Below, piece after piece: positions 6,001 to 57,298 of a stretch of DNA of 64,000 nt; within the stretch, counting starts at the first letter, position 1, and each line of letters begins with the position of its first letter. The notes under the pieces are model-generated. The model searched no databases, had not been told where the DNA came from, and saw only the letters and a program-made list of their open reading frames with translations. The stretch covers positions 1 to 64,000 of the IMG/VR virus record IMGVR_UViG_3300047321_000238. One strand, 5' to 3'. The translations under genes were made by a program, and so were the position numbers.

Positions 6001-9000
6001 TTACTTCATTGATACCAGCAAGTCTTGCCATTTCACAATCTATTCTAAGAGGAGAACATGTCATAATCTTTCTATAATTGATTAATCTATCTACGCAGTT
6101 TCTAGGTAAAGATTGAAGATTAGAAATAGTAGTCTTATCTTTAGTCTTTATATTTATTTCAATAGAAGTATCAGATGCTCCGATATATTGAGACACATAA
6201 CCATCCATAGAAGTTAAAGACATTTTATTAAAGTTATTGTTATATATAATCGAAACATTTTCTACTATGCAATTCTCTATTGGATATGGATCGAATAACA
6301 TAGACTTAGAAGTTTCTAAATCCATAGAATCTTTCATTGCAGCTAATGCTTGATTTTGTTGGAATAATTCATCTCCAGTTAATAGCGTATCTGTTAACAC
6401 GTTTCCTTTTTCATCAGTTATAAGGCCATAGTCATTAGCTATACTATCTAATAGATTTGTATCAGCATCAATATAAGTATAAGTGTCAAAAGATCCTGGA
6501 GCAACTATATTAAATGCCCCTGTTAGACTATATTGTACGGTTGTAGTTTTACTATCTGATTTTGTAGTTTTAGTATCTTTATATACTAAACCAACAGAAA
6601 ACCCAACAGTGAAAGCATCGTCTACTAATAATGTATCTGTAGATATAGCAAAACTTTTAGCATATTCTTGTTTTACTTTTCTTAATATATCTGGACTGCA
6701 TTTTGACCAATCGATGATTAGTTTTAAACCAAGCATTAAATTAATAGCCGTATCTGAATTTAATACTTTAGATTCTCTAATAACTATTCCATAATCTTTA
6801 ATTATAGAAGTATCAAAAGTTGTTTTATCTTCAAAGATCTTTTTTAAGTTATTTTCTAAAGGAGCTAAGTACTTATTAAAGAAAGCTGTAGGACTTATCC
6901 CATCAAAGTAAAATCCTTTTTCTCCCTTATATGATTTTGAATCATACTCTCCAGCTATATAATTATCAAAGTTATAATCAGCTATATCTCTTTCAAGATA
7001 AGGTGAATAATAATCTGTATCTGCATTATAAACTGCATTTATTTTCTTTATATCATCGTTAGCTACAGCTAATGTTTTTACAACTGCGGAATTCATTTTA
7101 GCAATCTTAGCTAAGAATGCTTTTTCATCAGCAGTATAAGTTACTACAGTTTCAAAAGGTTTCTTTTCTAAAGCTTCTTTTAATTGCTTTCTCATTTTTA
7201 AATGTTCTTCATTAGCAATATAGAAATCTATTAATGGACTCTTAAACTTCATTGGTTGAAGTACTGTCTTTTGTCCTAAAGTAGCTTCTAAATATGGCTC
7301 AGAGTTATAGTCAAGTAAAATAGCAGCTTCTCCATTTTGAATAGCTCTTTGATAGTAGTATCTCATAACTGGAAAATGAATTGTTTGTGCAAACAAATTC
7401 GTAGTTAAGTCTTCTTTTTTATCAATGTTTGGAGGTAGTATTTCTGGCATGAATTGTCTATATTCAAAGTCTTGTAATCTAATAGTAGCTTGAATAGTTC
7501 TTGGAAAATTAGGTACAGTACTTATTTGTATGCTACTTAAACTTACCGCTTCTATATTTAATACTTGGTTTATATAGTTATTTGTAATTGGTAAGTAAGG
7601 AGTGAATTTAAATTGAGCTATTAATGCTCTTAATCCATTCATATAATACTTCATAGTTTCTCCAGTAGGAAGTGTTTCTTCATAAGGAACTCCATTGATT
7701 CCTGCATCACCATTAAAGTATAATTGCATTTCTATTATTCTTTCTGACTTTGGAATAGTCTTAGTTATAGCACCCTTTGCTCTAATCAAAGATGTTCTTT
7801 GAGAATTAGTTTGAGAAACTAATCTAATTGAAGTTGGAGGCACCATTAACAAACAGTCACCTATAAGTGCTGTGTATTCTTTTAAGCAACTCATATCTGA
7901 ACCTGTAATTGCCCTTTGTATCTTTTCTCTATCGTCTCCTCCATGTTCGCTATGAAAGTCATTAAACTCATCTACATATATTTGAGCATTCTTATCATAA
8001 GACCACATTTTAAATGCACCAGAGTTATAATTGAAGTTAGATTCATTTGCAGGAGAACTACTATAAGAAGGTAGAATTACATACTCATTAAATTGACTAG
8101 CTAAAAACTTAGCCACATTAATCCATAATCCACTTCCATATTTAGGATCATCAGATTTAATATACATAGCACCAAGTCCACGCCTATTAAAGTCTTGTCC
8201 AAAGTAATCGTAACCTAATCTAGTATAAGCCTTACCTTGTGTATTTGTAGCTTGATTGTACAAATATTCAAGAGCGAAAGATGGATCGTCAGACATTCTA
8301 ATTGCATCACCTCTATACTCTTCAGGTACAGCATCTTTTTGTTGCTTAAAGGTTGTCCCATCTAATACAAAAAGCATAGCAGTAGCACCCTTAATCATAT
8401 CTTCAAGCATTGCTTTCGCGTCTAAAGATTGTTTGTGATAATCTTGATCTCTATCTTTTCCATCAGCTGGTTCATCTAAGAAACAAATAGCATATATAGG
8501 CAGAGGAATTTTATTTCCATTATCATATGTTTCATCTAGCTCTACATCTTTCTCTATTATTTCATAATAAACTTCTTTATCTCCAGAATTAATTACTAAA
8601 AAAGTAACATATTTATCGTCTTTTCTTACGTTTGCATATTCTAAATCGACAACACCTGTCTTTTTATCTATTATAGGAGTATAGTCAAAATAAACAAAAG
8701 AAAAATTAGCTCTATCTAATGTTTTATATTTATTAAGGATAGTACCTGCAGTATCACTGAATATTTTATCATCAGGATTATTATATGTCGTTATATTAGT
8801 ATTTGACATTAAATCACCAAATTTAGCATATATTATCTTAGGTTCTGCAGGTACATAAGTAACACGGCAATGAGGGATTTCGGGTGCATTTACACCCAAT
8901 ATTCTTATACCAAGTTTATCAACAGTAGTCGATAAACCCATAGTATTATATAAGAAATTTTTAACAGTAGGATATTCTAATCCGTCTCCTGCAAAGATAA

Positions 9001-9283
9001 AAGGTCTACCTCCATCTTCCATATAATCATATTTTGTACCTACTGTATCTCCATCTGTTACAGTAACTTTACTTGAAGAAATAACAAATACGTTTTCTGC
9101 TTCATGATAACCTAATTGTTCTGAGAATGGATTCTCTAAGAAATATTGTCCACCATCTTTTCCGTCTAACATTTTCTTAGCGATATCTATAATCATGTCA
9201 TTATCTAAGTACTCTGACATGTCAGGAGTCTTTGTCCAATTTTCATTTATTATAGATTCTGTTTTCGTTTTAACATCTGCCAT
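38..9283 (-). CDS. Giant virion protein (3081 aa): N-terminal thermonuclease (SNase)-like domain plus baseplate-hub (gp27/Mu gp44-like) region
   Basis: SNase motifs VTDGDTV, IRILGVNAPEI and DFNRRGLG; hub-like segment GELIVMGDPAVKPYDKMFVYD...GMFEIETVVQTFSVDTGFTTSL; located in the tail module; GGAGG RBS. Confidence 0.6.
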   Translation of the reverse strand: MADVKTKTESIINENWTKTPDMSEYLDNDMIIDIAKKMLDGKDGGQYFLENPFSEQLGYHEAENVFVISSSKVTVTDGDTVGTKYDYMEDGGRPFIFAGDGLEYPTVKNFLYNTMGLSTTVDKLGIRILGVNAPEIPHCRVTYVPAEPKIIYAKFGDLMSNTNITTYNNPDDKIFSDTAGTILNKYKTLDRANFSFVYFDYTPIIDKKTGVVDLEYANVRKDDKYVTFLVINSGDKEVYYEIIEKDVELDETYDNGNKIPLPIYAICFLDEPADGKDRDQDYHKQSLDAKAMLEDMIKGATAMLFVLDGTTFKQQKDAVPEEYRGDAIRMSDDPSFALEYLYNQATNTQGKAYTRLGYDYFGQDFNRRGLGAMYIKSDDPKYGSGLWINVAKFLASQFNEYVILPSYSSSPANESNFNYNSGAFKMWSYDKNAQIYVDEFNDFHSEHGGDDREKIQRAITGSDMSCLKEYTALIGDCLLMVPPTSIRLVSQTNSQRTSLIRAKGAITKTIPKSERIIEMQLYFNGDAGINGVPYEETLPTGETMKYYMNGLRALIAQFKFTPYLPITNNYINQVLNIEAVSLSSIQISTVPNFPRTIQATIRLQDFEYRQFMPEILPPNIDKKEDLTTNLFAQTIHFPVMRYYYQRAIQNGEAAILLDYNSEPYLEATLGQKTVLQPMKFKSPLIDFYIANEEHLKMRKQLKEALEKKPFETVVTYTADEKAFLAKIAKMNSAVVKTLAVANDDIKKINAVYNADTDYYSPYLERDIADYNFDNYIAGEYDSKSYKGEKGFYFDGISPTAFFNKYLAPLENNLKKIFEDKTTFDTSIIKDYGIVIRESKVLNSDTAINLMLGLKLIIDWSKCSPDILRKVKQEYAKSFAISTDTLLVDDAFTVGFSVGLVYKDTKTTKSDSKTTTVQYSLTGAFNIVAPGSFDTYTYIDADTNLLDSIANDYGLITDEKGNVLTDTLLTGDELFQQNQALAAMKDSMDLETSKSMLFDPYPIENCIVENVSIIYNNNFNKMSLTSMDGYVSQYIGASDTSIEINIKTKDKTTISNLQSLPRNCVDRLINYRKIMTCSPLRIDCEMARLAGINEVIVESVDINTVPNFPGLYSVSIRLTSVDRTLRNREALKKIDVDTSHTNNDNSILSKNFFDFQNVLSKVELYPDLELPTLSELERLGYYFIRYKNEQGRVFPDADFYFVYLHAYSSEMFRKSIVTFFSDPANDKLMHDISGDLYGDEAQVSLNLTRDEKVTELITDLGGSSAYAAEIQKVYDDAEKSLSGSAPYASKEITDHVSAKQKQNVAKTKIILDLQESLEASSYSTYDFNHQIKVSIKDSIPYDEASHIISGGNTTEVMDDGSLRKDVPVDDVIKTTNEGLKKLIKRLLNKPITTGDSKNIMPEDMYNLINYITEDILAIGPVDKAFKAFTVNGDKLDSGTPISKNTNPENQYVITSSVPYFMNHKLRTALSSAATGRASVLDFDKDDKTKKIDEWIGTSTVQAIKADGTKYNTRNILTTCDGQGMSDYVIAETDEEVANGLVYGPFAIKKYDPKYLGAIYKSSILSGEHGFLDPYYNRSVYNIFYKKEIEKDPSREMKADQEATRIAEYIKGISDETWDNKEQVESFGYASIAMYRIMLVWFYKLLDDDKQSFLPASFYYLKNVTDILNGDNSESAQDANSIMSSVNNPLMGFWNLSKGIMGYGASFLSEENTFRREVETRKEDDDANAAIQDKLEQMKKDLKEALPITKINLVCGLFTTLGALAIGEFNTPIYEAIVGGNLSEYSNYIESMKASYLNYNKLNKTDLIMRRFFSYLDFDEYNNKNAWNKRIDPLKKYSTANKSQRMYLKAAEIPKIYLMHSFYDMVMHDMRGRMARAFPTYYMLLIDEGRDLGMWHLQDNFYDTSSISEFQVVKSRKIAADTANIMMTNLFGTFTSEDEDMKDEYQYTFRDAWNSIFSPRDYYTKEFTRRTEARDFNRAKLKPGARVHLRMGYEGDASRLPILFNGAVAEVATEGDMMNVICQGDGVELANPDMFNAADADTVADLKYTENMLGGLYGLFNEHTTPRDLLINPLTSSGTWIKSLIKDWSNSRFFNDNPFGIVHFGDKYYKEVFLTNGEMEQNIYEAINKPSWGTSGETSCNESLWAMETSPKIKVGLEGGKSYWDLMGIAASVSPEHIAAVVPFNLRSSIFYGAPRYYCAYDYAKTIDGKIVEKRKPFQQYHIYTSHTDIIGNKIAASDKEIRTVAVGIYKGDDWLSASTQTVGPMYLDIDIYPENQKMTTINCNFEHKSFDLPFTIPVAGKLTETFTEEGYKTAWRATANGLKNTVKDMYTGELIVMGDPAVKPYDKMFVYDTYQDMQGMFEIETVVQTFSVDTGFTTSLAPDCVVAVDDKYEKIAHSTIKAVALPVIANFITVATLSARFANITRSLYFSAAQSVSSGVKFSENIVNSIKTMAGADELATYSGVADGVLGKLGSAFSATASDYLIYSSISTLEKAYKALPTSHSFASSTDLVKFFEDIQGQSAALSKIDPMVLKTQLQEALKDTSILQNGLDLKAKQKIENAITKCDEYIASIGKAKATMGNVAIDAEYIQNIIAAVPKDKYAEEGALKTAMDYLETIKDSKVVAGSANFDEAIANLIVASNNVDDFTEEAGATADLLKSLKTLDKTVFEASTVSLENFGTLGKTFAEVNTVRKGAGALKALVSSNLIWLAAQVVLTKYAQEYIERKLKNLQVLTVFPVMKNNLVMTAGLNGNKGSVFDSPTYSQPGFIEDMAAKFFDGKYGSVYPFVLECLVDTTQMKETVNSYKRDSAFGSATSSTNAEKADLSNKMVKSVVKQEVSSVDAYKQLFLVPRVGNPISQEGRVAYKNNCFLDVSDPSTDARIEKELVYIFQEGDMQLLNAPSDNSRQVLLFSAQQESNSKDASGNAIGTIEMKVAPATLGTEGSSVRCKKIEQGDGILPVYDIPFLRPDARHVLTLIVQSVALELQPDALAKTSTLENLHAHNIIIHNATRLNEKSSWSNTGYSFTIQVKGYDGFGNILKKLHDEQEIIIKDQSTPTRVFNYKEDTSMGDNTYTVMISPAL

Positions 9284-9326: not shown

Positions 9327-12300
9327 TTACAGAGCATCTTTTATAGCTTTCTGAATATCTCTATCATTAATATTACCGTAGTTATCATTGATATTCATGC
9401 TTATATTTACAGAAGATGAAGTTCCGCTAGATATTGCTTGTTGAATAGCAGATATCGCATGGTTCTTACCTTTATCTGATCTAGCATTAATATTAACAAC
9501 ATAACCTTGTTGGCCTCCCATACTAGATGGCATCATACCTTGATCCATTAATCCTTGTTGTGGTTGTTGATAATCATTAGCTTCTTCCATAGCTTGAGTA
9601 TCTGCAGGTCTTGGTCTTCCTCCTACATATCCTAACATCATAACTCCTGCAGCAATTCCTACTGCACCCATTGCTATCTTGCTACCTTTAGCAGCTTTAA
9701 ACAAATCTGCAGCACCTTCAACAATTTTTCTACCGATACCTTTTGCTTCATCACCAAGTTCTTCTTCAGCTCCAGTTACGACTTTATCTATAATGTTTGG
9801 TCCTCCCATTATAGAATTTTTAGCTACATCGTTCATATCTAAGAATTTAAATATATCACTAATATCTGAATCAGATTTCTTCATAATATTAATATATGAG
9901 TCTTGAACGTTTGGAAGATTAGCTGATGATACAGGTCTAGTAATTGCTCCAGTAACACCTGCCATAGATTGTCCTACAGAAGAGTACTTTAAAAAATCTC
10001 CTGTATGTGCAACATCTTTCAAAGAACCTATTGTGTTTACAAAATCTCTTACCATTCTAGATTGTAACTTCTCTTTATTTTCCTTACTTTCCATCATAGT
10101 AGAGAAAGCTTGTTTAGTCAATGATTTTCCGCCATTTAATTCCTCAGCGGCTATATTTTGGAACGTCTTAGATTTATTCCAATAGTAATCATGGTCTACA
10201 TCCTCTACAACATATTTTTTAGACCATGCTTTCATGTCTTCTAAATGTTGATTCATATCTCCTTTTTTTCTAATGAAATTTTCAACACTATTGTTCCATT
10301 GTTTAGCTTTGTCTGGATCAAGTCCTTTAATAGAAGACTTAGAAGAGATAGCAGCTTCTTCTGTTAAATACATCATGTTATATAACAATGATGATTTGTA
10401 ATTATAATCTTCAGAAGTTTTATCCAACGCTGTCATTGCAATGTTCTTAACTTTATAGTTAGTTACATTTGTTTCACCGATACCATTTTTAGCAGCCTTA
10501 GCTACAAACTCATCTTTGTTTTGTTGATAAGCAGTTGCTATACGATATTCATCTACAGCATTCTTATAACCTGCATGGTCATCTTTAAACTGTTCTTTAA
10601 ATTTATCAATTACTACTTGATGACTTCCAGTATCCATTGCTAATTTAACATTATTAGAATGTTTAATTAACATCTTTTCCATATCTGAAAGAGAATAGTT
10701 TTTTGTATCCATCATAGCACTATAGACTTTTCCATCTATAATTCTTTGACTTGCAATATCTTCAATTCTATTTCCAGCTGTTGCAATTCCTTGTTCTTTT
10801 GCAACTCTATCTCTTACTTTTTGATCCCAATGGTGATTTTCATTAACAGCTCTTGTCATTAACATATCTTCTTGAGATTGTATGAATTCACTTTTTGAAG
10901 TATTTCCGTTATATACATAATTAGAATAAGACTTTCCATTATTATCAGTTATTCTAGCTATCGCAAAATTATCTCCATCATGGTCCATCTTCATAGAAGC
11001 TCCAGTATGACCTAATGCTTTTAACTGATTGCCTCTAAGAGTTGTATCTAGATATCCCATAACAACTTTATCTGAAGATTCTTGGTTACGAGGGAATCTA
11101 GTAGCTAAGAAAGTATCTCCATTAGTAGATAAATGTTTGACCATTTTCTCTTTAGCATCTGTTGCATTTACGAAATCTTTACCAAGAAATTCTTTCATAA
11201 AATCTTCTTTAAAGTATCCCATCTTTTCGAATGCTTCATGAGATGCACTTACCGCATCAATTAATTGACCTTTTGAATAACGTTTAAGTAACGTCTCTCC
11301 ATCGAACATAGCAGTATCTAAAAATGTTTTACCATTTAGATTCTTTAAGTTTTCATAAGTATCTTCACCTAAAGCCAGGTTCGTATTTATAGTTAAACTC
11401 GAAGCTTTACCAAAAACTGATTGAGAAAGTCTAGTAGATATTAAATCACCAGCTAAACCGTTTTTACTTGTTACATCATGCTTTTGCATTTCTTTGATTT
11501 CGCCAACAAGCTTTCTAGCATAATTTTGTTCACGAATTAAGTCATCTGAACCTTCTTTAAGATTTCCGCTATTAATTCTTTGTAATGAACTTTGTAAACT
11601 ACCTAATGATTTAATATGGTTAGTCTTAATTAAACTATCTTCAAAATGACGTTCTGGCATTCTAGCTATAGCTAAATGTTCTTCATTCCCACCTAATCCA
11701 GTCTTTATCATAATGTTATGACTATAAGGATTATTAGCTGCAGAAACTATAGTATTTCCTTGACCACCTATATCTAAATCTAACCAACCAGCTTCATGAG
11801 GTTTTAAGTTACTTAGATCAACTTCTTTAAAAGCATTGTATGCATTTTTGTTATTTGATACTAAAGCATCATATTTATCTTGTGAATAAACTTTAGAATT
11901 GAAGTCTAAAGCTCTAACTCCTTGTTGATAAGAATAAAGCTTTTCTGCTTTTTCTACAGATATCTCATGAGTTGAATCTTTATAGCTTTCTAACAAATGC
12001 TTATGAGTACGTTTATCTTTTCCTTTAAGGTCAGATAATCTTGTTTCTCCATATCCTATTAAAGTTCTACCTCTTAGTATTGAAGTAACTGGATCTAACA
12101 TACTTTTATTTAAATACTTTTCAGATATCTCTCCACTTTCATTTAAAGCATGCCCAAAGTATTTGTTGAATTCTGTAGGATTCATTCTTTCACGAGCTAA
12201 AGCCATTGAATCATTGTTATAGAATTCCTTTTGTAAATTCAAGTTCATTCTATTATCAAACTTTAAACCTTTTTGATTAGCTATGCCTTCAATTTGATTG

Positions 12301-15300
12301 TCTATATCAGCTATCCTAACTGAGTGGTCAAGTGTTTTATCTTTCCTCATTTCAGCTGTTAATTGATTACGTTCTTTAGATAATTCATTAATATCTACAT
12401 TGCTTGAGTAAGTTCCAGATTGATGATCGTATGCTTGAATTGTATGAGAGTAACCTGAATGGCCAACAACATTCTTCTTGTCATTTAACACAAGATTTTG
12501 ATTATTCAATACTTCTTGTAGAATCTTACCTTCTCCTCTTACTAACCCATACTTTGCAAAGTCCTTATCGAAGCCAGCTACATTAATCCTATCTACATCA
12601 TCAGTTATTAATGTACCATTCTTTATTTTTAACTTATCTCCAAAAAGAGCTTTATAGTATTTTCCAAGATCCTTTTTATTAATCTTCTCATTTCGTTGTA
12701 AACTCTCTATAATGTTAGTAGCAGCTAATGAAATAGATTCATGCTTAGTTGCTTCTAAACTTGTAGTTTGAGCTACTCCTTTAAATGCTGGGAATAATTC
12801 TTGTAATGTATCTGAGAAAGCAAATCTTTCTTTAAGTATTCTATCTTCAAAATTCTTTCCTAATTGAGGTGTTAAAAAATCTTCTATATATTCTCTTGAT
12901 AGGTATTGTCCATGAAGTCCTTTAAAGTTTTTAGATTCTAAATCTTTTGCTAAAGTAGAATCGATTGAACCAATAGCCATATCCATTGAATCAACAGTTG
13001 ATTTTTCTGAAGCATCATTATAAATCTTATGACCAAAGTTATCGTATTTATTAATAACTTGATAGTTGAAATTATACTCTTCATTTAAGAAGTCTAAAGC
13101 TGCTTGACCAGTTAGCTTTCTACTTTTAATAGCTTTATTAAGTTCTCTTTGAGATACGACATCTCCATGCTTATTAAAGAATCTACCTCTAAATACACCA
13201 TCAAATTTAGATTGAACTATATTCTTTTCTGAACCGAATGCTCCTAAGACTTGTTCTCTCTTTACTTCATATCCTAATTGATATTTAATATTGCCGTCTG
13301 CATCTATTGTAGGAACTAATTTATGACTTTCTTTAATTGCATTAATAACACTAATGTTTTGATTATGAGCTATTATTAATTCTTTTTTTGCATTAATTAA
13401 TTGTGAATTAGTTTTATAGAAAGCAGCGTATTGTACTCTAGAATCCATTATAGATTGTTGTTCATAAGTACTTAAACTCATTGCTTTCTCTGCTAATGCT
13501 TCGGAAGCTTTACTAAGTTCAGCTTGTGTTAATTTTCTTCCATAATTATTAGACAAGAATTTGCTGAATCTATTTGATTTACCTTCTCTTACTTTTATTA
13601 CATCATCAATAAATTGATTCTTTAAAGTATTAGAATCCATTTGCATATATTTCAATGTTAACCCGCCAGTGTATTTTCCATTGTGGTTAACATATTTGTC
13701 TCCAGCAGAAGACATTAACTTACCGCCAATTGACATGTTTTTTGCTAGTTCTGAATCTTTCTTTAGATATTCATTTATATCTTTTTTAAGATCACGTCTA
13801 TCATATAATACAGTGTTTTCTCTTTGAATAGAAACAGATCTTCCTGTCTTATCGAACTTAGCTATACCATGTTCGTATGAACTATTATCAACAGTTAAAA
13901 TACCTTTAGCTAAGTTTGTATCTTGAGTATGAGGATTTACTGTTTTAGCTAATTCCTTTAAATTTAAGCCATCGATATTTCCTAGATCAGCTCTTTCTTG
14001 AAGCATTGATAATATAGGATTAAGATATTCATCAAAGAATAAATTTTGTTCAGAAGCTAATAATTTGTTAATTTTATCAGGTCTGTAGTCTCCTTTTTTC
14101 ATTTTCTTAATCAAGTCTTTCATGCTTGCAGAAGACTTATCACTTATATTATAAGTTGTTTCTATTTCACTTAATAATCCAGAATGTTGTAATTCAGGCA
14201 AAATACCTACTATTGGATTAGTATTAAAATACATTGCTCTTTTTATTGTATTACTAAAATTAGCATTTTCTTTTCTAGGACCAATTTCTCTTAATACTCC
14301 TGAATCTTTTTTTATCTTATATAAAAGAGATTGAATAATATCTCTATCTCCGTCTCTTGCACTTTTAATAACTTCTTTATAAGTTCTAGTTTTACCTAAA
14401 GCTTCTTGTACATTTGAAGTTATTCTTACATGATCAAGAACATCATGAGCTGAGACATTACCTGGCTTACCTGTTCTAGATAGAATTTCATTTACATTTA
14501 AACTGAAGTTAGTTGCATAATCATTGTTGTTGATTCTATGATTAATAACTCCATCATTTAAAACGTATTTATACATATCAAAGAAATGTTGTTCTCCATT
14601 TCCATTCGTAAAGAACATGTTAGCATTTTTACCTCTACCATTTACGCCTAGAGTTATACCAGTGTCTTTAAGACCTTCAATCAATTGTTCTACTCTAGTA
14701 GTGGCATCTTGCTTACTGAATCCATATTGAGCCTTCATCCATTTTTGTTGATCTGAATTTAAACCCTTAATTTGCTTTTCAAAATCATTTTGTGAAAACG
14801 TCATGAAATAATTGTTTACTACATCTGAAACTAAAGTCTTATTTTTTTCATCAGCAATATAAGTTCTAGAGTTAACTGATTTCATTTCATTAGTAATTAA
14901 TGATTTTAATTTACCTGGCTCAACTCCTGCAATCATACCTGTTAAAGTATCTACATTAGAGTAATCTTGTATAGTTCTAGCAAACTCTAATCCAAAAGCA
15001 GGATTGTTTTTTCTTTCAACATCTACAAATGAATGCAATCTTGTTGTCATTTCATGATTTAATTGTGAATAATTACCGCCATTTTGGTATGAGAATACTT
15101 CTTCTTTTGATAAACCATTCCATACTCCTTTAAATCTAGGATCTTCCCCTATAGCATCATAAGCTGAATTTAAAGCAGTGAAACCAGCATTAGCTTTCTT
15201 GGATTCTTTTACATTCTTAAAGTCATTGCCATGGAACATGTTTAATAAACCATCATTCTTTGTTAAATCTAAAGAAATGAATTTGCTATTTTCTCCAGCA

Positions 15301-17930
15301 ACAGTATAACCTTGATGTGTTTTTTCTATCTCTGGAAATAAGTCTCCTCTTAAGAAATCTATTTTCTCTAATTCATCTCCTGTAAATATAGAAGATTTAG
15401 AATTACTTAATGTTTCAGTAGTTGCTCCAGGGAGTTGTTCTAATACATTGCTCATTACGCTTTGGAATATAAGATTCTTTTGAGCTTTTAATGCTTTAGA
15501 ACTAACACCTTTTGTTCCTTGACTTAAACCTAATTCAGCAAACACATCTTCCATAGTATTTAACAATGGACTTAACGCTTCTGAGTATTTATCTGTTATT
15601 AATGCATTTGCAACAGTTTCAGGCATCAGTCTCATTTCTTTAGTATTATGATCTTCCCACCCTAATGTTGCAGTTAGGTTTTCCATAAGTCCTTGAGTGA
15701 TATTAATTCCTGCAGTTTTATTCTTAGATATCATTTCTGCAATAGTTTGAGAAACTCTTTGATGAGTTGCGTTAGCAGCATTAGTTGTATATCTATGAAG
15801 TTTAGCTACATCTTCATACTCTAGTTTTCTAAGTTTTGATGCAGGACTATCTACATGCATTCTATAAGAACTTCTATCTTTTATCATTTCCCATGCTTTA
15901 TCTGGATCTTCTATGCTCTCTAAAATTACAGCTCCATTTTCATTTTTCATTGTTTTTAAATTTAGAGCTTTAAGATTGTCTTTCATGATATGCTCTTCAC
16001 CGTTTTCGCCAGCACGAGCTACATACGTTCCAGTCATAGTAGGTATTTGGTTCTCATTAGTTAATAGCGTATAGAAAACTGTAGAATCTTCGTAAGTAAC
16101 ATCTTTACCAAACTTAGCTTCAATCATTTTCTTAGTTTCATAAGGAGTAGATTTCATTACAGTTAATTTATCTAAAGTTGAGTATTCTTGATAGTATTGT
16201 CTATCACTAGGTATAGGTAATCCTAAATCTGTGAATGCTTTTTTCCATGCATCTCCTTCATGATTTAAATCAACACTAGAGAACTCGTGAGTATATAAAG
16301 CACCTGACTTAGGACCGTATCCTTGAATATCTTCTTTAGTTACTTTTCCATCAGCACTTATTCTGAAACCATCATAAGTTTTATATGAACCATCTATTGG
16401 ATTATGAGAAAAACTTAATCCACCCTTATTAGAATTCCAATTCTTTTTTCCTGTCTTATCCATAAGGAATACAGCTTTTCCGCCATTTCTATCTGTCATA
16501 GGAATATTATGTTTTAAGTCAGTTAATTTGCTATTAACTTTCTTAGTCATTCCAAACATATATTCACCATAAGACATATCTTTACCATTTATATTTATAG
16601 AATTGTCTGCAAATATATGAAATAAGTTATTTTCATCAGCCTGTGCATTATGGGCAGATACTGACTTGTTTCTTCCTTTATTAAATAGGAAGTTAAATTG
16701 ATCTTCAGTAGCTATACCGAATTTTCCAGTAGCTTGCATTCCTTGTGGTATATGAGAAGCTTGACCAAAGTTTTCTTGAGCATATTTTACAGATTGATAT
16801 AAATCTACATGCTTTCCAGCTTCGTGTCCTACATTTTCTCCTAATATCATTCTTGCACCTGGATCATCGAATATGTCACCATTTTGAGATATAGCAACAC
16901 GATTGTTATATGTTAATCCAGGAGTACTGTTGCTTATTCCTCCATATACTAAATCAGTATATTGTTTAGTATATTTTTTCTTATAATCAGATAATGTTCC
17001 TAATCCATTTTCAGCCAAGTATTGTTCTTGACGCTTACCTATATTTCTATATTCATCAAGACCAATTAAAGCGTTATCTATATTCTTTGTTATATTATCT
17101 GGATCATCAGCACCCGTAATTCTAAATTCAAATCCATTATCTTCATTTTGTTTCACTTTAAAAGTAGGATCACTTAATAAACTTAATCTGCTAATATATA
17201 CGTTATCTCTACCAGTAAGTTCATTAGGAGTTTTACCTCTTAAGCTTGTAATATAATTTTTTACCTCTTGGTGTTCTTCATGTGTAAAACCAGCTACACT
17301 ATTAAGAGTATCTATTGGATTTTTAGATTTAACACCGTTTGCGTTTACTCCCCAAACAGAAGCTGAGAATTCAGTAATATAATCGAATTGTTGATGTCCT
17401 TCCGCATTTACTCCACCTAAAGTTTCTAAATCGTAACTTATAATATTTCCACCATTTTTCATGATGTCCATATAGTTATTGAAAGATCTATATAAGTCTT
17501 GGAAATCAGTCATTTCTGTTTTTGTTGTTCTATTATAATTAGTATAATTAATATCATGAGCCATACCTATAACATTTTTAATTAGTTGAGCACCAGATTC
17601 TTGTTTAGTTAAAGTAGATAAGTTTCCTGATATGCCTTGAAAGAATCCGCCTTTATATAAATTTCCATAAACAGCTTCTCCGATTTTAGAATCACTTTTA
17701 AAACTAGTAGGCTTCTTAAAATCTTTTGATTCTGTAGATAGAACTGTTATAGTATCACTAAAATCTGTTATAAAATCTTTCATCCCTGGATGTATTCCAG
17801 CAACAGTATTTCTTTCTTGATCGCTCATGCCTTTATATAAATCACTATCTAGTATTTTTCTTCTATTATTAGTTTGTTCTTTATTAAATTGATTTGCACT
17901 TTTTCTACTAAGCCACAATTTTTTAAACAT
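9327..17930 (-). CDS. Giant single-chain two-barrel RNA polymerase-like protein (2867 aa) with N-terminal DEDDh exonuclease domain; candidate virion RNAP
   Basis: Beta'-like: KNGLAGDLISTRLSQS, TRFP and MDHDGD. Beta-like: YEQQSI and GHKIYNDASEK (K-x7-K). DEDDh: YDLET, NGDIFD, HNAQAD. C-terminal hydrophobic helix. Confidence 0.7.
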   Translation of the reverse strand: MFKKLWLSRKSANQFNKEQTNNRRKILDSDLYKGMSDQERNTVAGIHPGMKDFITDFSDTITVLSTESKDFKKPTSFKSDSKIGEAVYGNLYKGGFFQGISGNLSTLTKQESGAQLIKNVIGMAHDINYTNYNRTTKTEMTDFQDLYRSFNNYMDIMKNGGNIISYDLETLGGVNAEGHQQFDYITEFSASVWGVNANGVKSKNPIDTLNSVAGFTHEEHQEVKNYITSLRGKTPNELTGRDNVYISRLSLLSDPTFKVKQNEDNGFEFRITGADDPDNITKNIDNALIGLDEYRNIGKRQEQYLAENGLGTLSDYKKKYTKQYTDLVYGGISNSTPGLTYNNRVAISQNGDIFDDPGARMILGENVGHEAGKHVDLYQSVKYAQENFGQASHIPQGMQATGKFGIATEDQFNFLFNKGRNKSVSAHNAQADENNLFHIFADNSININGKDMSYGEYMFGMTKKVNSKLTDLKHNIPMTDRNGGKAVFLMDKTGKKNWNSNKGGLSFSHNPIDGSYKTYDGFRISADGKVTKEDIQGYGPKSGALYTHEFSSVDLNHEGDAWKKAFTDLGLPIPSDRQYYQEYSTLDKLTVMKSTPYETKKMIEAKFGKDVTYEDSTVFYTLLTNENQIPTMTGTYVARAGENGEEHIMKDNLKALNLKTMKNENGAVILESIEDPDKAWEMIKDRSSYRMHVDSPASKLRKLEYEDVAKLHRYTTNAANATHQRVSQTIAEMISKNKTAGINITQGLMENLTATLGWEDHNTKEMRLMPETVANALITDKYSEALSPLLNTMEDVFAELGLSQGTKGVSSKALKAQKNLIFQSVMSNVLEQLPGATTETLSNSKSSIFTGDELEKIDFLRGDLFPEIEKTHQGYTVAGENSKFISLDLTKNDGLLNMFHGNDFKNVKESKKANAGFTALNSAYDAIGEDPRFKGVWNGLSKEEVFSYQNGGNYSQLNHEMTTRLHSFVDVERKNNPAFGLEFARTIQDYSNVDTLTGMIAGVEPGKLKSLITNEMKSVNSRTYIADEKNKTLVSDVVNNYFMTFSQNDFEKQIKGLNSDQQKWMKAQYGFSKQDATTRVEQLIEGLKDTGITLGVNGRGKNANMFFTNGNGEQHFFDMYKYVLNDGVINHRINNNDYATNFSLNVNEILSRTGKPGNVSAHDVLDHVRITSNVQEALGKTRTYKEVIKSARDGDRDIIQSLLYKIKKDSGVLREIGPRKENANFSNTIKRAMYFNTNPIVGILPELQHSGLLSEIETTYNISDKSSASMKDLIKKMKKGDYRPDKINKLLASEQNLFFDEYLNPILSMLQERADLGNIDGLNLKELAKTVNPHTQDTNLAKGILTVDNSSYEHGIAKFDKTGRSVSIQRENTVLYDRRDLKKDINEYLKKDSELAKNMSIGGKLMSSAGDKYVNHNGKYTGGLTLKYMQMDSNTLKNQFIDDVIKVREGKSNRFSKFLSNNYGRKLTQAELSKASEALAEKAMSLSTYEQQSIMDSRVQYAAFYKTNSQLINAKKELIIAHNQNISVINAIKESHKLVPTIDADGNIKYQLGYEVKREQVLGAFGSEKNIVQSKFDGVFRGRFFNKHGDVVSQRELNKAIKSRKLTGQAALDFLNEEYNFNYQVINKYDNFGHKIYNDASEKSTVDSMDMAIGSIDSTLAKDLESKNFKGLHGQYLSREYIEDFLTPQLGKNFEDRILKERFAFSDTLQELFPAFKGVAQTTSLEATKHESISLAATNIIESLQRNEKINKKDLGKYYKALFGDKLKIKNGTLITDDVDRINVAGFDKDFAKYGLVRGEGKILQEVLNNQNLVLNDKKNVVGHSGYSHTIQAYDHQSGTYSSNVDINELSKERNQLTAEMRKDKTLDHSVRIADIDNQIEGIANQKGLKFDNRMNLNLQKEFYNNDSMALARERMNPTEFNKYFGHALNESGEISEKYLNKSMLDPVTSILRGRTLIGYGETRLSDLKGKDKRTHKHLLESYKDSTHEISVEKAEKLYSYQQGVRALDFNSKVYSQDKYDALVSNNKNAYNAFKEVDLSNLKPHEAGWLDLDIGGQGNTIVSAANNPYSHNIMIKTGLGGNEEHLAIARMPERHFEDSLIKTNHIKSLGSLQSSLQRINSGNLKEGSDDLIREQNYARKLVGEIKEMQKHDVTSKNGLAGDLISTRLSQSVFGKASSLTINTNLALGEDTYENLKNLNGKTFLDTAMFDGETLLKRYSKGQLIDAVSASHEAFEKMGYFKEDFMKEFLGKDFVNATDAKEKMVKHLSTNGDTFLATRFPRNQESSDKVVMGYLDTTLRGNQLKALGHTGASMKMDHDGDNFAIARITDNNGKSYSNYVYNGNTSKSEFIQSQEDMLMTRAVNENHHWDQKVRDRVAKEQGIATAGNRIEDIASQRIIDGKVYSAMMDTKNYSLSDMEKMLIKHSNNVKLAMDTGSHQVVIDKFKEQFKDDHAGYKNAVDEYRIATAYQQNKDEFVAKAAKNGIGETNVTNYKVKNIAMTALDKTSEDYNYKSSLLYNMMYLTEEAAISSKSSIKGLDPDKAKQWNNSVENFIRKKGDMNQHLEDMKAWSKKYVVEDVDHDYYWNKSKTFQNIAAEELNGGKSLTKQAFSTMMESKENKEKLQSRMVRDFVNTIGSLKDVAHTGDFLKYSSVGQSMAGVTGAITRPVSSANLPNVQDSYINIMKKSDSDISDIFKFLDMNDVAKNSIMGGPNIIDKVVTGAEEELGDEAKGIGRKIVEGAADLFKAAKGSKIAMGAVGIAAGVMMLGYVGGRPRPADTQAMEEANDYQQPQQGLMDQGMMPSSMGGQQGYVVNINARSDKGKNHAISAIQQAISSGTSSSVNISMNINDNYGNINDRDIQKAIKDAL

Positions 17931-18849: not shown

Positions 18850-21800
18850 CTAAAATAATTTGTATAAAGCATTTTGAACTTTTTGATTTAAATTATATTG
18901 TGTTACTCTTCCGATGTTGGTTATTACTTGTAACCCTGAAGCAGAGGTAGGTTCTACGGATACATCTACGCTATGCAAGCCAACGCCATTTAATAATCCT
19001 AACATATCTCTTTGTAGAGCAAGAGGAGATGGACCATTATGAATATCTTTTATCTCTGGAGCTTTTTGGTATGCAGGTTCATTTTTATTTGAATCATACA
19101 TTCCAAAGTCAGATAATAACATACCTTCATTTTCTATAGTCTTCATCTTAATATTTTCTAAGTTCTCATCTGGCCTCCAACCTGCCCAAAACATATTAGG
19201 TAGATTGTGATTACTAAAGAAAGATTTATTAGATTTAGCTTTATCAACTTTTTCTCCCCATAAAACTTTTAAAGCTTTTTGTTTGTAAGGAGAAATCATC
19301 TTAAGTATCTTCTTCCTAGCTCTAGGATCTTTCTCTTTAGCAAACTCTAAGAAATAGTCTCTATCGTATTTAGGTAAAGCTCTAAGTACATCAGCCGCTG
19401 AAGAGTTATTTGTTAAACCATATATAGTTGTGTCTGCAGCTTTCTTATAAGCTAAAGCTGCTTTAGTATATTTGCCCATTTTATAATACTGTTCAGGAGT
19501 TTGTAACTTATATATTGCATTGCTAATATTGTAATCAAGTTGTTTCTTTACTTTAGCATCGATAGTATATTTATCTACTCTTTCTTTTTGCTTCTGTAAT
19601 CTTAATATTGCTTTCTGATTCTTTTTTTGATTGTATTCAAATTTGTTAACAATAGCTGCAATATTAACGCCGTCTTTTCTCTTAGATAGTCGTGCTGCTT
19701 TATTATATAAACCCATGTACTTCATGTATTCTAATCTGTCAAAGTACTCTTCTAATTCCCACTTCTTTTTAGTGTTCTTAGGAATGTACTTGCCAAACAT
19801 CTCATGATAGTTAAAGCTAGGATTTTTAATAGCTGATAATCCTACTCCGATAACTGCTCCAGCAATTGCCCCTTTTCCACCGCCAATTGTTTCTCCTTCT
19901 TTTTCTGCTATCTTTAATGCATTAGCTAAACCAGGAAACTTATTAGCTGGAACTTTTAATTGTCTAGCAACTGCGAATCCAGCCATACCGAAGTTAGCTG
20001 CACTTGCAATAGGATTATTTAAATGAGCAAATCCATAACCTAAAAATCCAATGGTTGCTGATATATTTGCACCATTCTTAGAATTCCAAACAGAAGCTTT
20101 AGATCCCCAATTCATTCTAGGAATTGCTCCAATAATTCCACCAGTTAAAGCATATGGATTAGTGAAAGCGAATAAAGCATGTGATGCCCATTTAGCTTTT
20201 CCTTCTAAACCTTTAGCTCTAGCTTGATTAGACCAGTACCAACTTGCTAAACCAAGAGCTTGAACTCCTAACCCTTTAGACCAACCAGTTTGTAATGTTG
20301 GCATAATGAATCCTTTAATAGGATGTCCCCATGTAGAATAGTTTGTTCCATATACTTGTTCTTTCTTATAAGATTCCATTGGATCATCTATTCTTAAATA
20401 CTTGTTATGAAGATAAGGAATTTGAGCATGAGCAATTCTTTCAAATATAGGGCCCATCATCTTATTAGAATCACCAGCAGCAAATAATTGATCAGCTAAA
20501 GTATCTTGACTATATTTCTCTTTAGCTTTCTTTTCTTCCCACATCTTCTTTGAGATACTTTCAGCTCCAACATTAACTAATGCACTAATAGATCCAGTAT
20601 TATCTCTTTGTCTAAATTTATTGTTTTCGTATTGTAATTCTACAATCATACCTGGCTTTAAGTATTCATGAATATAACTTTTCTTATTTTCATCATTAAG
20701 AGGCTTGACTCCAGCTAGAGTATATTGTTCATCACTACCGACTACTGTAAATCCTCCAGCATTAGCTACAGTGTTAATAACAGCGTGTCTAGTTTCCATC
20801 TTCTTTCCTGCAAATTGATAATTGTAGAATTTGTGATCGCTAGATTGAACCTTAACCCTCTTTTCTATTTGAGCCATTTCAGTTTTCATTTGAGGAGTTA
20901 ATGATGTTTCTTTCGCAATCTTTTTCCATGTCTTATACTCATCTGAACCAGGAGATATATCTGCTAAGATTTTGTATCTATCAAATGCACCATATCTTCC
21001 ATAACTATCTGGATGTAATTTATTTAAAGTTTCATATCCAGCACCAGGAAGTCTAGCTTCTCCTTTAGTTACTTTCGTATAAGGATCTCCTGTTTGATAT
21101 CTTTCAGGCATCCATAATGGCATAGTATTTCTAAGTGGATTAACTTGTTCGATATCATGGTTTTCATGTGGGAAGAAACGTCTAGCGATTTCCATGAAGT
21201 CTCCACCCATACCGCCTACGCCTTCATCCCAGAATCCTCGAACAAAAGAATTCATTTGTCCAGCTTTTTCTAATTGATATCCATGGCTAGCAGGTAACAT
21301 TGAATCAGCTAAGAATCCATACATACCTGATAATTGTTTAGCTGAGTACATTATGCTAGAAACATAATCACTCTTAGAACCTATTTCATTAACATGTATA
21401 TCATTAAGATATTTATCCTTAGCATTAGCAGCAGCCATAGTGAACGGTATATTTTGTAGTTTAGTATTTTCATTTATAACGCCGTTATCTTGGAATTCGT
21501 TAGCATTATTGCCTCTTGTTTTAATACCTTGATTAACTCCAGCTATTAATGACATTGCAGTTGAACCTGTTGTTAATCCACTAGTTACAAGTCTAGATAA
21601 GCCACTAGTTAACATGTCGCTAATAACTCCACTAGGTTCTTGATTTACATTAACATATTGAACTTGAGTGCCACTACCTCCACCTCTTATAACTGGAACA
21701 ACTGTATGATCAACTCCAGCTAGAGTTTCAGGATATCTTTCTCCATCAAATCCTGCAGATGTTACTTTACCTCTACTATTAAACTTAAGACTATATACAG

Positions 21801-24800
21801 ATTCACTCATTGAAGGCATAGACTTAGCTTTATAATCCATTGGTGTAAAGCCAGCTGGATCAACTCTAATAACTCTGTTTCCAGGTGCTTGTGCTTTGAT
21901 GTCGTTGTTTCTATTAGCTATTATTGATCTAACATCTAACAACGTACCGCTAAGTTCTGATTGATGCATTCTTCTTATAGGCTTTATTAATTGACCTATA
22001 GTAGGATTTAATACTGCTCCCCATGGAGTTTCTTCTTCGAATAACGAGCCTGTTACAGGATATGGTCTATCCCAATAATGTTTTTCTTCAAGCCAATAAG
22101 GATTAGCTAAATATCTTAATGGAGATAATGGATGTCGAAGAGTAGGAATTAAACTGTGTTTCCATTTCTCATCTTCTGAACCATATAGAGAAACATCTTT
22201 ATAATGACTATATGCTTGTCTTATTTTATTTGGTTCATAGTAAGATACTTTTCCTCCACGGAATTCAGAAGCAGAACCGAAACTCCACCATCTACCTTTT
22301 CTAACTGGATCTTCACCATTCTCTAAATAATCAAGATATTCATCTTTATCTTTATAGTCTCCAAGCCAGTAATTAGTAATAGGATTATACATTCTAGAAC
22401 GTCTATGATTGTCAGCCATTCCAGTTACTTGAGCAAATGTTTTAACTCCTACTCCAAAATTAGCTCTGAAGTTATAGTAGTCTTGAACAAAAGAAGTACC
22501 AGTTAAGTTTTCAGCTTCAAAGTTTAAATAACTAGCAGCATAACCTATTCCCATTATAGGCAGTATTCTTTTAAGTCCTAAGAATTTAATTTGATCTAGT
22601 ACACTTCCAGTGTTAGCTTTTGATGCACCTAATCCAAACTTCTCCATTGGAGTTATAAGTCTGTTAAGCATATGGTATGGTAAGAATGTAGCAGTAGTTA
22701 TATCTTTAACATTATTTCTTCCAGCAAAGAATTGTTTACCAAATCCCCTAGCTGCTGCAGCTGCTTTAGTAGAATCATTTAAGCTTTTAATAACATCAAG
22801 AGCTGATATAGATTTTCTCATTGTAACCCATTGATTATTTCTATGACCTTTTTGTATTGAGTTATCTTCTTCTATTACAACGTCTTTTCTCCAACTAGAA
22901 TTACTCTTTATGAAAGAATTGATTCCTGTTCTAAATTCGCTTAAGAACATATCTGTTTGAGCATTCTCAGAACTACCTTTTATTATATGACCAAAGTGTG
23001 ACATGATAGATTGTTTTTTTAGTCTATCTTGAACCTCATGTTGTGCTGAAGAGAATGATGCAGTTTCTTGTTGAAGAATACCCCAATTGAATATATTCTT
23101 CAGATTCTTTCTATCTGCTCCAGTGATATTCATCTTGCTTATTTTACTATAACTTATAGAATATCCTTGAACAAAATTTCCAATATAACTATTCTGATGT
23201 GCAGAATCTCTTAATAAAGCTTCTTTTACTACTTCTCTTTTAAGTAAATCGTTATATTTAAGAATGTTCATTCCATTCTTGTCACCAAGGTTTCCAATTT
23301 GAGCTATAGTATTTATTGAAGATATATTCTTCTTATACTTATTAACTAGAGACTTTAGATCACGATTCATAAATTCATCGTATTCATTTTCTATTAAATG
23401 GCCTGCAATATTATCATGGTTTAATGAGCTTAATACCATTCTTGCATGAGGGCCCAATGTCTTTTGTAATTCATTAATTGTATTTTTAGAAGGAGCGAAT
23501 GTTCTATGATTATATAAACGATTAACTTGATTTACATCTTTACCAAACTTCATCGCTGCTTCTTCATCTATCTTTGCATAAGTATCGTGACTAAACAATC
23601 TTTTAGGTACATTACCAACCCAACTCGAACCTTCACTAAACTTACTAAAGAATCCTCTGAACCTTTCAAGTTCATTTGTTCCTGTTGTATTAAAGTCTAA
23701 CCATTTAAGAGTCTTGTTGTCTTGAACTTTAGTGTCAAAGTTACCTTGTATTCTATTGTTCATTACATTGAAAGAACCATGTCTTCCAGACATAAGATAT
23801 AAATTGTCAGCTTCTTTTACATGCACTAAGTCACCATTATTATATTGGAATATTTTATTTCCTATTTTAAAATGGTCGAATCCTAACATTCCACTTTGTG
23901 ATCCAGTTAGATTTCCTAATACTGAATCAAAAGAACCTTGTGGTAAGTAGAAGAAATCTGGTGCTTTCTTATTGTCTATAAAACTTCTAGCAGAAAATAG
24001 TTTACCAGCGATTGTATCAGCAAACTCTTCTTTAACTTTGTAGCTTAAATCATTAATAGCTTTTGTAGAATAAAGTTCTCCATTTTTATTTACTCTTAGA
24101 GTAGCATTATCGATAACCATATCATTAAATCTATTATCATGTTGAACTAAAGCATGTAATGTATCAATAATATTATCATGACTTCCTTCAAACAGTTCAG
24201 AGTTCTTTATACTTGTTGTTTTGTTATCTACTCCGCTTAACAAGTCTCCAACAGTGGCTGCTCTATCTAAAGTATTTTTAAAGAATGTATCTTTCTTATT
24301 AGTATACTTATCTATAAGCTCTTCTTTATACGTATTTAATAATTGACCTTTAAATTTATCTTGATACTCAGTACTAAACTCTTCTTCTAATCTTTTAGAG
24401 TTATTTAAAGCTTGTTCCATAACATTCATGATGTCATCTTTATGCTCTTCTAAGATAGAACCATTAATCCTATCTTCAAATTCTGATCTGACCAAACTAG
24501 TTCCTTCGGCAGATTCTTGTAGATAAGTACTCTTTTTATTTAAACTCTCATCAACCATTTTGGTTAACTCTGAAAAGAACTCTCCTGAATTTGCTTTTGC
24601 ATTTTCATTTAGTTTTATATTATCAGTAAGAGATGTCATTACATGATTCTTTTGAACAGCATCAAACATTTCATCAGCTAAGTATGTTCCATCAGTTTTT
24701 AGTTTATTATAATGAAGTGCAGAAGATAATAATCCTCTACTATAATCAAGCTCTATACCTGTTTCTCTTCTAGTTGCATTCCAAGTGCTATCATCATTTA

Positions 24801-25035: not shown

Positions 25036-25109
25036 TAATTTCACCTCCAAAAAAAAGATAATAATAAAAGCTTGTTAACTTCTATTACTATCTCTTTTAA
25101 TCTCTATAA

Positions 25110-57156: not shown

Positions 57157-57298
57157 TAAATCTAAGACTAATAAGACTACTGAAGGATTGTTCGTAATCT
57201 TTCAATGCATGGGCCTATAGTATTTGAACTTAGGCACTATGAGTGACAGGGATAATGGGGTACAAATAAAAATATATGATGAAAAGGATGGATACAAA

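Follow-up and report, generated by a model that had tools for sequence, protein, structure and literature searches.

Virion RNA polymerases (RNAPs) free some phages from dependence on the host enzyme at the start of infection. To our knowledge, few kinds have been characterized, namely those of N4, of phiKZ/AR9, of the crAss type (gp66), and of P23-45 (gp96). The last is a single-chain two-barrel RNAP within a very large protein of the tail module, encoded at the tape-measure position (PMC10770324), and the crAss-type enzyme of phi14:2 transcribes single-stranded DNA (ssDNA) and denatured DNA well but double-stranded DNA barely (bioRxiv 10.1101/2020.03.07.982082). Here we describe a giant gene in the first 64 kb of the IMG/VR virus record IMGVR_UViG_3300047321_000238, a 64,000-nucleotide stretch that we refer to throughout as the window. 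The gene is an intact open reading frame (ORF) on the minus strand (9327..17930) and encodes a protein of 2867 amino acids (aa) that comprises an exonuclease, an RNAP-like core, and a conserved C-terminal module. Overall, we consider it probable that this protein joins a competent DEDDh exonuclease permanently to a two-barrel RNAP-like core and a C-terminal anchor, and that it does so at the tape-measure position.

The exonuclease domain spans residues 135-470 (16521..17528, on the minus strand, as are all features of the gene given below) and is defined by profile matches, conservation, and a structural model. The ExoI motif, IISYDLETLG (residues 163-172; 17415..17444), lies on strand beta-1, is invariant, and supplies D167 and E169. 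The ExoII motif, QNGDIFD (residues 349-355; 16866..16886), includes N350, F354, and the catalytic D355 and aligns to that of solved members, and the ExoIII motif, SAHNAQAD (residues 425-432; 16635..16658), is of the DEDDh type, with the H427-x4-D432 spacing of the h subclass rather than Y-x3-D. The strand after ExoII carries D376 (16803..16805), the invariant Asp of an 'xDTL'-type element that aligns to the VDTL of Plex9.1; an Asp in this strand is typical of DnaQ-like enzymes. A preliminary description of this DNA had listed the same three motifs in the order ExoI, ExoII, and ExoIII, and both the motifs and their order are confirmed in the intact ORF. The span it gave, 16630-17445, does cover the stretch from ExoI to ExoIII, but the folded domain is wider, at ≈16521-17528. 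The three-motif set is far beyond chance coincidence, as a permissive pattern (D.E[ST].G ... N...[FY]D ... H.A..D) was found in only five of 20,000 shuffles of the giant protein. A first word-indexed search returned five homologs, with all five catalytic residues invariant. Among the aligned representatives, which share only 16-46% identity with the query, D167, E169, D376, H427, and D432 are each conserved in 62 of 62 sequences and D355 in 61 of 61, with one gap. In the full-length homologs, the same six residues are conserved without exception (54/54).

Comparison with solved structures leads to the same superfamily. When a profile of 61 family sequences was searched against PDB sequences, every one of the 23 matches was a DEDD exonuclease, including the TREX1 homolog Plex9.1 (E 4.6e-4), RNase T, Exonuclease I, TREX2, and the exonuclease domains of PolB and PolC; a six-sequence profile searched against the PDB gave noise only. 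Motif by motif, fDlETlG of the profile pairs with FDLETTG of Plex9.1 at ExoI, GhNianFD with GHNSRRFD at ExoII (GHN-SFD in RNase T), hlDtl with VDTL, and aaHnAeaD with AHDASED at ExoIII (AHSARYD in RNase T). The preliminary assignment of these residues to the DnaQ/RNase T catalytic set is thus upheld, with all five catalytic residues present in 54 of 54 homologs and DEDD enzymes as the only PDB profile matches.

The structure model from a shallow alignment was mediocre (predicted local distance difference test score, pLDDT, 64), and that from the 61-sequence alignment reached a pLDDT of 95.3 and a predicted template modeling score (pTM) of 0.92. When the model was compared with 48,161 PDB chains by a Foldseek-independent aligner, Plex9.1, Exonuclease I, 3'hExo, and TREX1 came out first, with the Pol III epsilon, PolC-type, and DinG exonuclease domains also ranking high. 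All 50 structural matches listed are DEDD-type folds, and DEDD exonucleases superpose on the model at 2.9-4 Å. Shape neighbors of the domain in the ESM Atlas are likewise phage RNase_T-type exonucleases. Within the model, the D-x-E lies in the strand at model residues 27-40 (beta-1), the ExoII Asp starts the helix at 217-229, D376 ends beta-5, and the H-x4-D falls before and within the last long helix (295-307). Judging from the superposition and these secondary-structure positions, the catalytic side chains would be gathered around two metal sites. An RNase H-like DEDD fold with conserved acidic residues had been set beforehand as the test of the assignment; the fold matched and the residues proved invariant. 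By sequence and by model, residues 135-470 are thus predicted to be a DnaQ-like DEDDh 3'-5' exonuclease with an intact, conserved active site on the right fold.

Hsp70/actin-type ATPase domains, which Foldseek ranked first on both models, were rejected because their template modeling (TM) score is ≈0.2 and their root-mean-square deviation (rmsd) is 15-17 Å. In these low-TM alignments, Foldseek places model residues 11-237, comprising the sheet and a helical insertion, on lobe II of the Hsp70/DnaK nucleotide-binding domain, and the resemblance probably reflects a shared RNase H-like core plus the helical insert. Judged from the secondary structure of the model against the 174-residue epsilon domain, the insertion comprises ≈100-125 residues (≈214-339; 16914..17291), forms helices and a beta-hairpin between beta-3 and beta-4, and has family-conserved residues of its own (V244, R248, G290, and Q301). 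The domain represents a compact, previously unrecognized DEDDh family with its own insertion.

The exonuclease is found in one protein architecture throughout the family. An HMMER search with the exonuclease-domain profile against 1.84 billion cluster representatives retrieved 64 proteins. None of them is a cellular exonuclease, and nearly all are 2500-3400 aa long and have the domain near residues 130-480. At 50% identity, the family thus numbers 64 clusters or more, mostly metagenomic. Starting from the polymerase side, a search found 32 homologs of 2574-3022 aa, and all 32 have the exonuclease domain, the one partial case having a truncated N-terminus on a short contig. Since searches from both sides retrieve the same architecture, the exonuclease-polymerase fusion is, at the level of sequence, universal as far as the family is detectable, and homologs do keep the fusion, a point on which the preliminary description had asked for a check. 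Single-sequence searches with the whole protein and with residues 1-533 found nothing in Pfam, PHROGs, or the PDB (phmmer), and tblastn with three parts of the protein found nothing among 50,697 phage records. On one metagenomic contig (ENA ERZ25039478 contig_9150; 370,505 bp), the giant gene is present twice in diverged form (P0014, 473-9067; P0077, ≈251.5-260.3 kb); the two copies are either true paralogs or the result of a chimeric assembly of two phages.

The second main part, the two-barrel RNAP-like core (residues 1480-2420; 10671..13493), was delimited by a conserved block and by its hhalign match to P23-45 gp96. Its candidate metal-binding motif, which would belong to the beta-prime-like barrel, is R2278-x-P2280...D2316-H-D2318-G-D2320 (10971..11099), identified by conservation and register. 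In the full-length alignment, D2318 is conserved in 54 of 54 sequences and R2278, P2280, D2316, and D2320 in 53 each; the lone outlier, P0067, deviates at all four positions and is probably misaligned. Most family members have the D-x-D-G-D at about residue 2300, and the spacing from R-x-P to DxDGD is 38 residues, compared with 39 in phi14:2 gp66. A candidate two-lysine motif of the beta-like barrel, K1635-x6-E1642-K1643 (13002..13028), has all three residues conserved in 54 of 54 sequences and a K-x7-K spacing that we take to be the same as in E. coli beta; both lysines lie upstream of the DxDGD barrel, and no alignment or fold ties either of them to the beta-like barrel.

When the 941-column profile of the core was used as the hhalign query against residues 1-1200 of P23-45 gp96, there was one match (score 32.8, P 0.0074), and this brings the catalytic motif, L..GD...R-x-P...DxDGD, into register with its gp96 counterpart, which reads RNP...DFDGD. 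None of 60 shuffled gp96 sequences reached this score, the highest being 21.4. From the motifs and this one modest match, the core is likely a two-barrel RNA polymerase, and the fusion partner of the exonuclease is likely a virion RNAP of the P23-45 gp96 kind. The N-terminal fusion to a candidate virion RNAP proposed in the preliminary description therefore holds as to the N-terminal place, and the invariant DxDGD and the gp96 register agree with it; the RNAP identity itself is to be read as likely. Language-model look-alikes of the core gave weak leads only, a PF00623 scan yielded no usable beta-prime sequences, and a related-locus search with gp66 returned gp66 only.

A 1672-aa ORF in an oppositely oriented block of the window (57224-62242, plus strand) contains R-H-P followed after ≈60 aa by DGMDFDIDAMQ, which resembles the NADFDGDQM-type catalytic motif. 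By this motif, the ORF may encode a further two-barrel RNAP, of the non-virion type that P23-45 also has. The ORF matched nothing in PHROGs, Pfam, the PDB, tblastn against phage records, or BLASTP to gp96, and hhalign gave no significant match to the virion polymerase family.

The remaining parts of the giant protein are less readily classified. The N-terminal leader (residues 1-134; 17529..17930) aligns among close homologs, with M1 and K4 invariant, and has no match in Pfam or PHROGs. Between the exonuclease and the polymerase-like core, which are ≈1000 residues apart, lies a middle region (residues 471-1479; 13494..16520) without a Pfam or PHROG match, for which language-model comparison gave weak leads to internal-virion or cargo proteins only. 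The C-terminal module (residues 2690-2867; 9330..9863) is, by its conservation profile, the most conserved part of the family, and it holds the only strongly hydrophobic segment by hydropathy, a Gly/Ala-rich stretch at about residues 2751-2771.

The source record is 247,883 bp long, with direct terminal repeats and a completeness estimate of 100%; its first 127 bp recur at its end, the pattern of a circular assembly. The GC content of the window is ≈31%, and positions 38-52,861 form a single minus-strand block of virion genes, which includes the large terminase (45976-47727), the portal (42408-44621), and the tail sheath (30986-33934). The nearest large terminases are those of Moorella phage MTATph1 (43% identity) and of the Bacillus jumbo myophages of the 0305phi8-36 group. 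Because of this kinship and the virion gene content, the window phage is a contractile-tailed jumbo phage, not a crAss-like podovirus, and its host probably belongs to the Bacillota. Two genes downstream of the sheath gene, behind a 218-aa ORF, a 907-aa ORF (27467-30190, minus strand) matches in its N-terminal 175 residues a PHROG labeled 'major head protein'. Genes with the same label also directly follow the sheath genes of MTATph1, and the label may be a database-spread mis-annotation of the tail tube. Elsewhere, the record encodes gyrase B and A subunits (127905-132404, plus strand) and two DnaE-type Pol III alpha paralogs with PHP, alpha, finger, and HhH domains (172122-175307, plus strand; 185519-188974, minus strand). 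No other DEDDh/epsilon-type exonuclease is detectable in the 248-kb genome, where the domain of the giant protein is the sole one. Its role as the missing epsilon partner of the two DnaE polymerases was considered and set aside as unlikely because the gene sits in the tail module.

Within this block, the sheath gene is followed by small genes, a 2066-aa ORF (18850..25050, minus strand), the 2867-aa giant ORF, and a 3081-aa ORF (38..9283, minus strand). In 0305phi8-36, the tail chaperonins gp143/144 are followed by gp145 (1930 aa), gp146 (2537 aa), and gp147 (baseplate hub). By gene order, the 2066-aa protein, which found no family match in PHROGs/Pfam-type scans of the window proteins, is the positional counterpart of gp145, and the 3081-aa protein, with DUF6046 at residues 1011-1121, is the counterpart of the baseplate-hub giants gp147 of 0305phi8-36 and gp035 of Bacillus phage vB_BauM_KLEB27-3 (KLEB27-3). 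The window phage, 0305phi8-36, and KLEB27-3 thus keep one order, in which tail tube/chaperone genes are followed by the giant and then by the baseplate giant, and the giant protein is encoded at the tape-measure position of this lineage. As 0305phi8-36 gp146, annotated 'hypothetical tape measure protein', has been detected by mass spectrometry as a virion protein (record note; PMC2147016), we infer from the synteny and annotation of relatives that the giant protein is a virion component as well. By analogy with tape-measure proteins and with P23-45 gp96, it is likely to be ejected with the DNA.

Isolated relatives were scanned with the exonuclease profile. KLEB27-3 gp034 (OM634661.1 35003-42307; 2434 aa) is a true, cultured family member, annotated 'structural protein' on a basis that is unstated. 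It matches the exonuclease profile at residues 77-370 (E 4.5e-14), with all DEDDh residues present, the polymerase profile at residues 1715-1963 (E 6.6e-9), including a DYDGD at 1933, and, weakly, the family C-terminal module; neither the exonuclease nor the polymerase domain had previously been annotated. Its gene lies, as in the window, between tail tube/chaperone genes and a giant baseplate protein, but gp034 is shorter and so divergent that tblastn with the window protein misses it. The annotation of gp034 could accordingly be updated, and since KLEB27-3 is a cultured member that can serve as an experimental system, the role of the fusion is directly testable.

The more distant 0305phi8-36 gp146 (EF583821.1 52623-60236) occupies the same gene position as the giant protein. 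The C-terminal 178-residue profile of the family matches the extreme C-terminus of gp146, collinearly and weakly, in keeping with published work in which gp146 and its prophage counterparts share conservation over the final 60 residues only (PMC2147016). In mid-protein, gp146 has a DEDDh-like set in the right order (DIETTG at 1223, GQNVADAD at ≈1446, VLDTL, and HLARAD at ≈1685), located centrally and not near the N-terminus as in the giant protein. No DxDGD motif was found in gp146, and the RNAP of 0305phi8-36 (orf99) is a separate gene (PMC2147016); tblastn with the exonuclease-like region returned 0305phi8-36 itself only. In MTATph1 (OR602862.1 30512-37868), CDS0027 carries part of the exonuclease, the gene right after it encodes a transposase, and CDS0031 carries the family C-terminal module, an arrangement that looks as if a mobile element had split the giant gene. 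At the sequence level, gp146 and MTATph1 CDS0027 appear to have an exonuclease but no detectable DxDGD core.

Enzymes of the DEDDh superfamily hydrolyze the 3'-terminal nucleotide of DNA or RNA by two-metal catalysis and require a free 3' end. In the giant protein, D167, E169, D355, and D432 would bind the two metals and H427 would act as the general base in hydrolysis of the 3'-terminal nucleotide. Once the protein has entered the cell together with the DNA, the exonuclease may act on DNA and not on the transcript, resecting, at nicks or at the incoming end of the genome, the strand with the 3' terminus and so handing a single-stranded template to the polymerase module. We tentatively prefer this 3'-end resection of entering DNA as the biological role, while regarding it as a possibility well short of an even chance. 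It is preferred because gp66 favors an ssDNA template, because the nearest structural neighbors of the domain are DNA exonucleases, and because the exonuclease lies ≈1000 residues from the polymerase core. The apparent retention of the exonuclease without a DxDGD core in gp146 and CDS0027 further suggests a job independent of transcription chemistry. A last consideration is that some crAss-type virion RNAPs (vRNAPs) carry fused SF1 helicases, another route to single strands. Many of the crAss-type vRNAP homologs of gp66 (P0102-P0195) have precomputed Pfam matches to accessory enzymes, among them NADAR (PF08719), a 2OG-Fe(II) oxygenase (PF13532), and SF1/PIF1-type helicase domains, and for this reason domain accretion on ejected polymerases seems common. 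If true, template preparation would explain how ssDNA-preferring two-barrel polymerases start on an incoming duplex, which is an open question for gp66.

Several results weigh against this account, at the level of the domains as well as of their role. DEDDh enzymes take RNA as readily as DNA, so the fold itself is silent on substrate. The virion location of the giant protein rests on its relatives, and the match of gp146 to the exonuclease profile is weak and not significant alone. The Foldseek E-values for the exonuclease domain are weak too. The window protein has no match to Pfam RNase_T (PF00929) and no Pfam exonuclease model over threshold; RNase_T gave sub-threshold matches in three of 61 family members (best E 0.003) and nothing in a six-frame scan of the genome. 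As no Pfam threshold is passed, we regard the domain as a separate, previously undescribed family within the DEDDh superfamily. On the polymerase side, hhalign against phi14:2 gp66 (PDB 6VR4) put its best alignment on the catalytic segment (RIP...DFDID) with an E of 0.46, which is not significant, and a gp66-family profile of 120 sequences still gave no significant match, though a sub-profile was in register. Finally, HMMER with a 28-sequence core profile found nothing in the PDB or Pfam, a blank that agrees with the published remark that similarity among two-barrel RNAP families is slight outside the DxDxD region (PMC10770324).

The same architecture can be read as a proofreading device. Here, the exonuclease would remove misincorporated or backtracked nucleotides from the RNA 3' end, a service that nsp14 ExoN, another DEDDh enzyme, performs for the coronavirus RNA polymerase, or it would trim transcript 3' ends. 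A DnaQ-like exonuclease fused to a polymerase is the classical proofreading arrangement, the epsilon and PolC proofreaders are among the top structural matches, the two modules are equally invariant and never apart within the family, and a solitary ejected polymerase would presumably work without a Gre/TFIIS-type partner. Yet two-barrel RNAPs deal with backtracked RNA themselves, by cleavage in the polymerase active site, there is no evident selective pressure for accuracy in a few early transcripts, and the modules are separated by ≈1000 residues; the relatives that seem to retain the exonuclease without the DxDGD core, weak as that evidence is, also argue against it. We therefore consider transcript proofreading or 3'-end rescue unlikely. 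If true, such RNA editing would provide the first dedicated proofreader on a two-barrel RNAP.

An ejected effector independent of transcription seems to us rather unlikely too. In this role, the domain would degrade host or defense nucleic acids with free 3' ends, such as nicked host DNA, mRNA or small RNAs, retron or other defense DNA/RNA, and linear oligonucleotide signals or linearized products. Accessory enzymes are commonly collected by giant ejected polymerases, as in the gp66 homologs, and DnaQ-like exonucleases are common in phages; the apparent presence of the exonuclease without the polymerase core in relatives and its standing as the sole DEDDh domain detectable in the 248-kb genome would suit such a role as well. 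An ESM Atlas phage cluster joins a 2H phosphoesterase/Acb1-like domain to an RNase_T exonuclease, which hints that some phage DEDDh exonucleases act downstream of signal-linearizing enzymes. Against an effector, one or few copies would be delivered per virion, with little capacity for bulk degradation, and no specific tie to any defense system was found. The degradation of nucleotide signals raised in the preliminary description is unlikely for cyclic signals because these have no 3' end, and a 3'-5' exonuclease needs a free one.

More broadly, the exonuclease and the two-barrel polymerase might be one machine, of a kind absent from the known systems, delivered by the contractile tail within the tape-measure protein. 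It could be either an RNAP with a DnaQ-type proofreading/3'-processing site or a PolD-like DNA-making enzyme with a proofreader. We hold this unified view to be improbable. Its second form, in which the core makes or primes DNA by a PolD-like use of the two barrels and the DEDDh domain proofreads, is by itself highly improbable. DnaE PHP domains can proofread alone; the core finds its best match in a demonstrated RNAP (P23-45 gp96); and the gene is in the tail module, not a replication module. What speaks for DNA synthesis is that the two DnaE-type genes of the phage have no detectable epsilon partner, that the nearest structural neighbors of the exonuclease are replicative proofreaders, and that archaeal PolD is a proofread two-barrel DNA polymerase (PMC7281927; 10.1101/2023.08.09.552591). 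A degenerate or structural relic, or a chance resemblance to the motifs, might be suspected from the lack of a single-sequence Pfam or PHROG match and from the Foldseek ranking of Hsp70 ATPase domains, but is effectively refuted by catalytic residues that are invariant at 16-46% identity, by the poor Hsp70 fit (TM ≈0.2, rmsd 15-17 Å, against 2.9-4 Å for DEDD exonucleases), and by the shuffle test (5/20,000).

Among described enzymes, the exonuclease domain shares its fold and motifs with the DnaQ/Pol III epsilon-type enzymes (E. coli epsilon, 1J53; PolC; DinG; TREX1/Plex9.1; Exonuclease I; and RNase T). The domain differs from these in its ≈100-125-residue insertion, in being too divergent for the Pfam models, and in its location in a 2867-aa tail-module protein rather than in a replisome or as a free enzyme. 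Viral DEDDh exonucleases that work with or beside an RNA polymerase are exemplified by the coronavirus nsp14 ExoN and the arenavirus NP exonuclease (PMC7968707). These belong to RNA viruses, which use right-hand polymerases and encode the exonuclease as a separate protein, and the analogy is functional only.

Given the tape-measure position of the giant protein, which the preliminary description had missed, the closest precedent is P23-45 gp96. It resembles the giant protein in size, in belonging to the tail module at the tape-measure position, and in carrying a single-chain two-barrel RNAP, demonstrated in gp96 and likely here. P23-45 also has a non-virion RNAP, gp64, to which the second candidate RNAP of the window phage (57224..62242) would correspond. 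In gp96, however, the polymerase is N-terminal (residues 327-1124), whereas in the giant protein the core is central and the DEDDh domain comes first, and P23-45 is a Thermus siphovirus, unlike the jumbo myovirus described here. A second comparable protein is phi14:2 gp66, a very large single-chain two-barrel polymerase that is ejected and whose gene stands in a cluster of genes for giant structural proteins; its R-x-P-N-Q..SS...D-x-D-x-D segment is in register with that of the window protein at near-identical spacing. It differs in having DFDID in place of DxDGD, in lacking an exonuclease, and in coming from a Bacteroidota podovirus. A full-text literature search, with most subscription journals outside its scope, found no description of a DEDDh/DnaQ exonuclease fused to a two-barrel or virion RNAP, and neither the P23-45 paper (PMC10770324) nor the gp66 paper (10.1101/2020.03.07.982082) mentions an exonuclease. 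What the family adds to the known systems is a jumbo-myophage protein at the tape-measure position whose polymerase-like core is always joined by an invariant DnaQ-type exonuclease. Overall, each of the parts is of a known kind, and the novelty lies in how they are combined, in the divergent, insertion-bearing exonuclease family, and in its occurrence in jumbo myophages.

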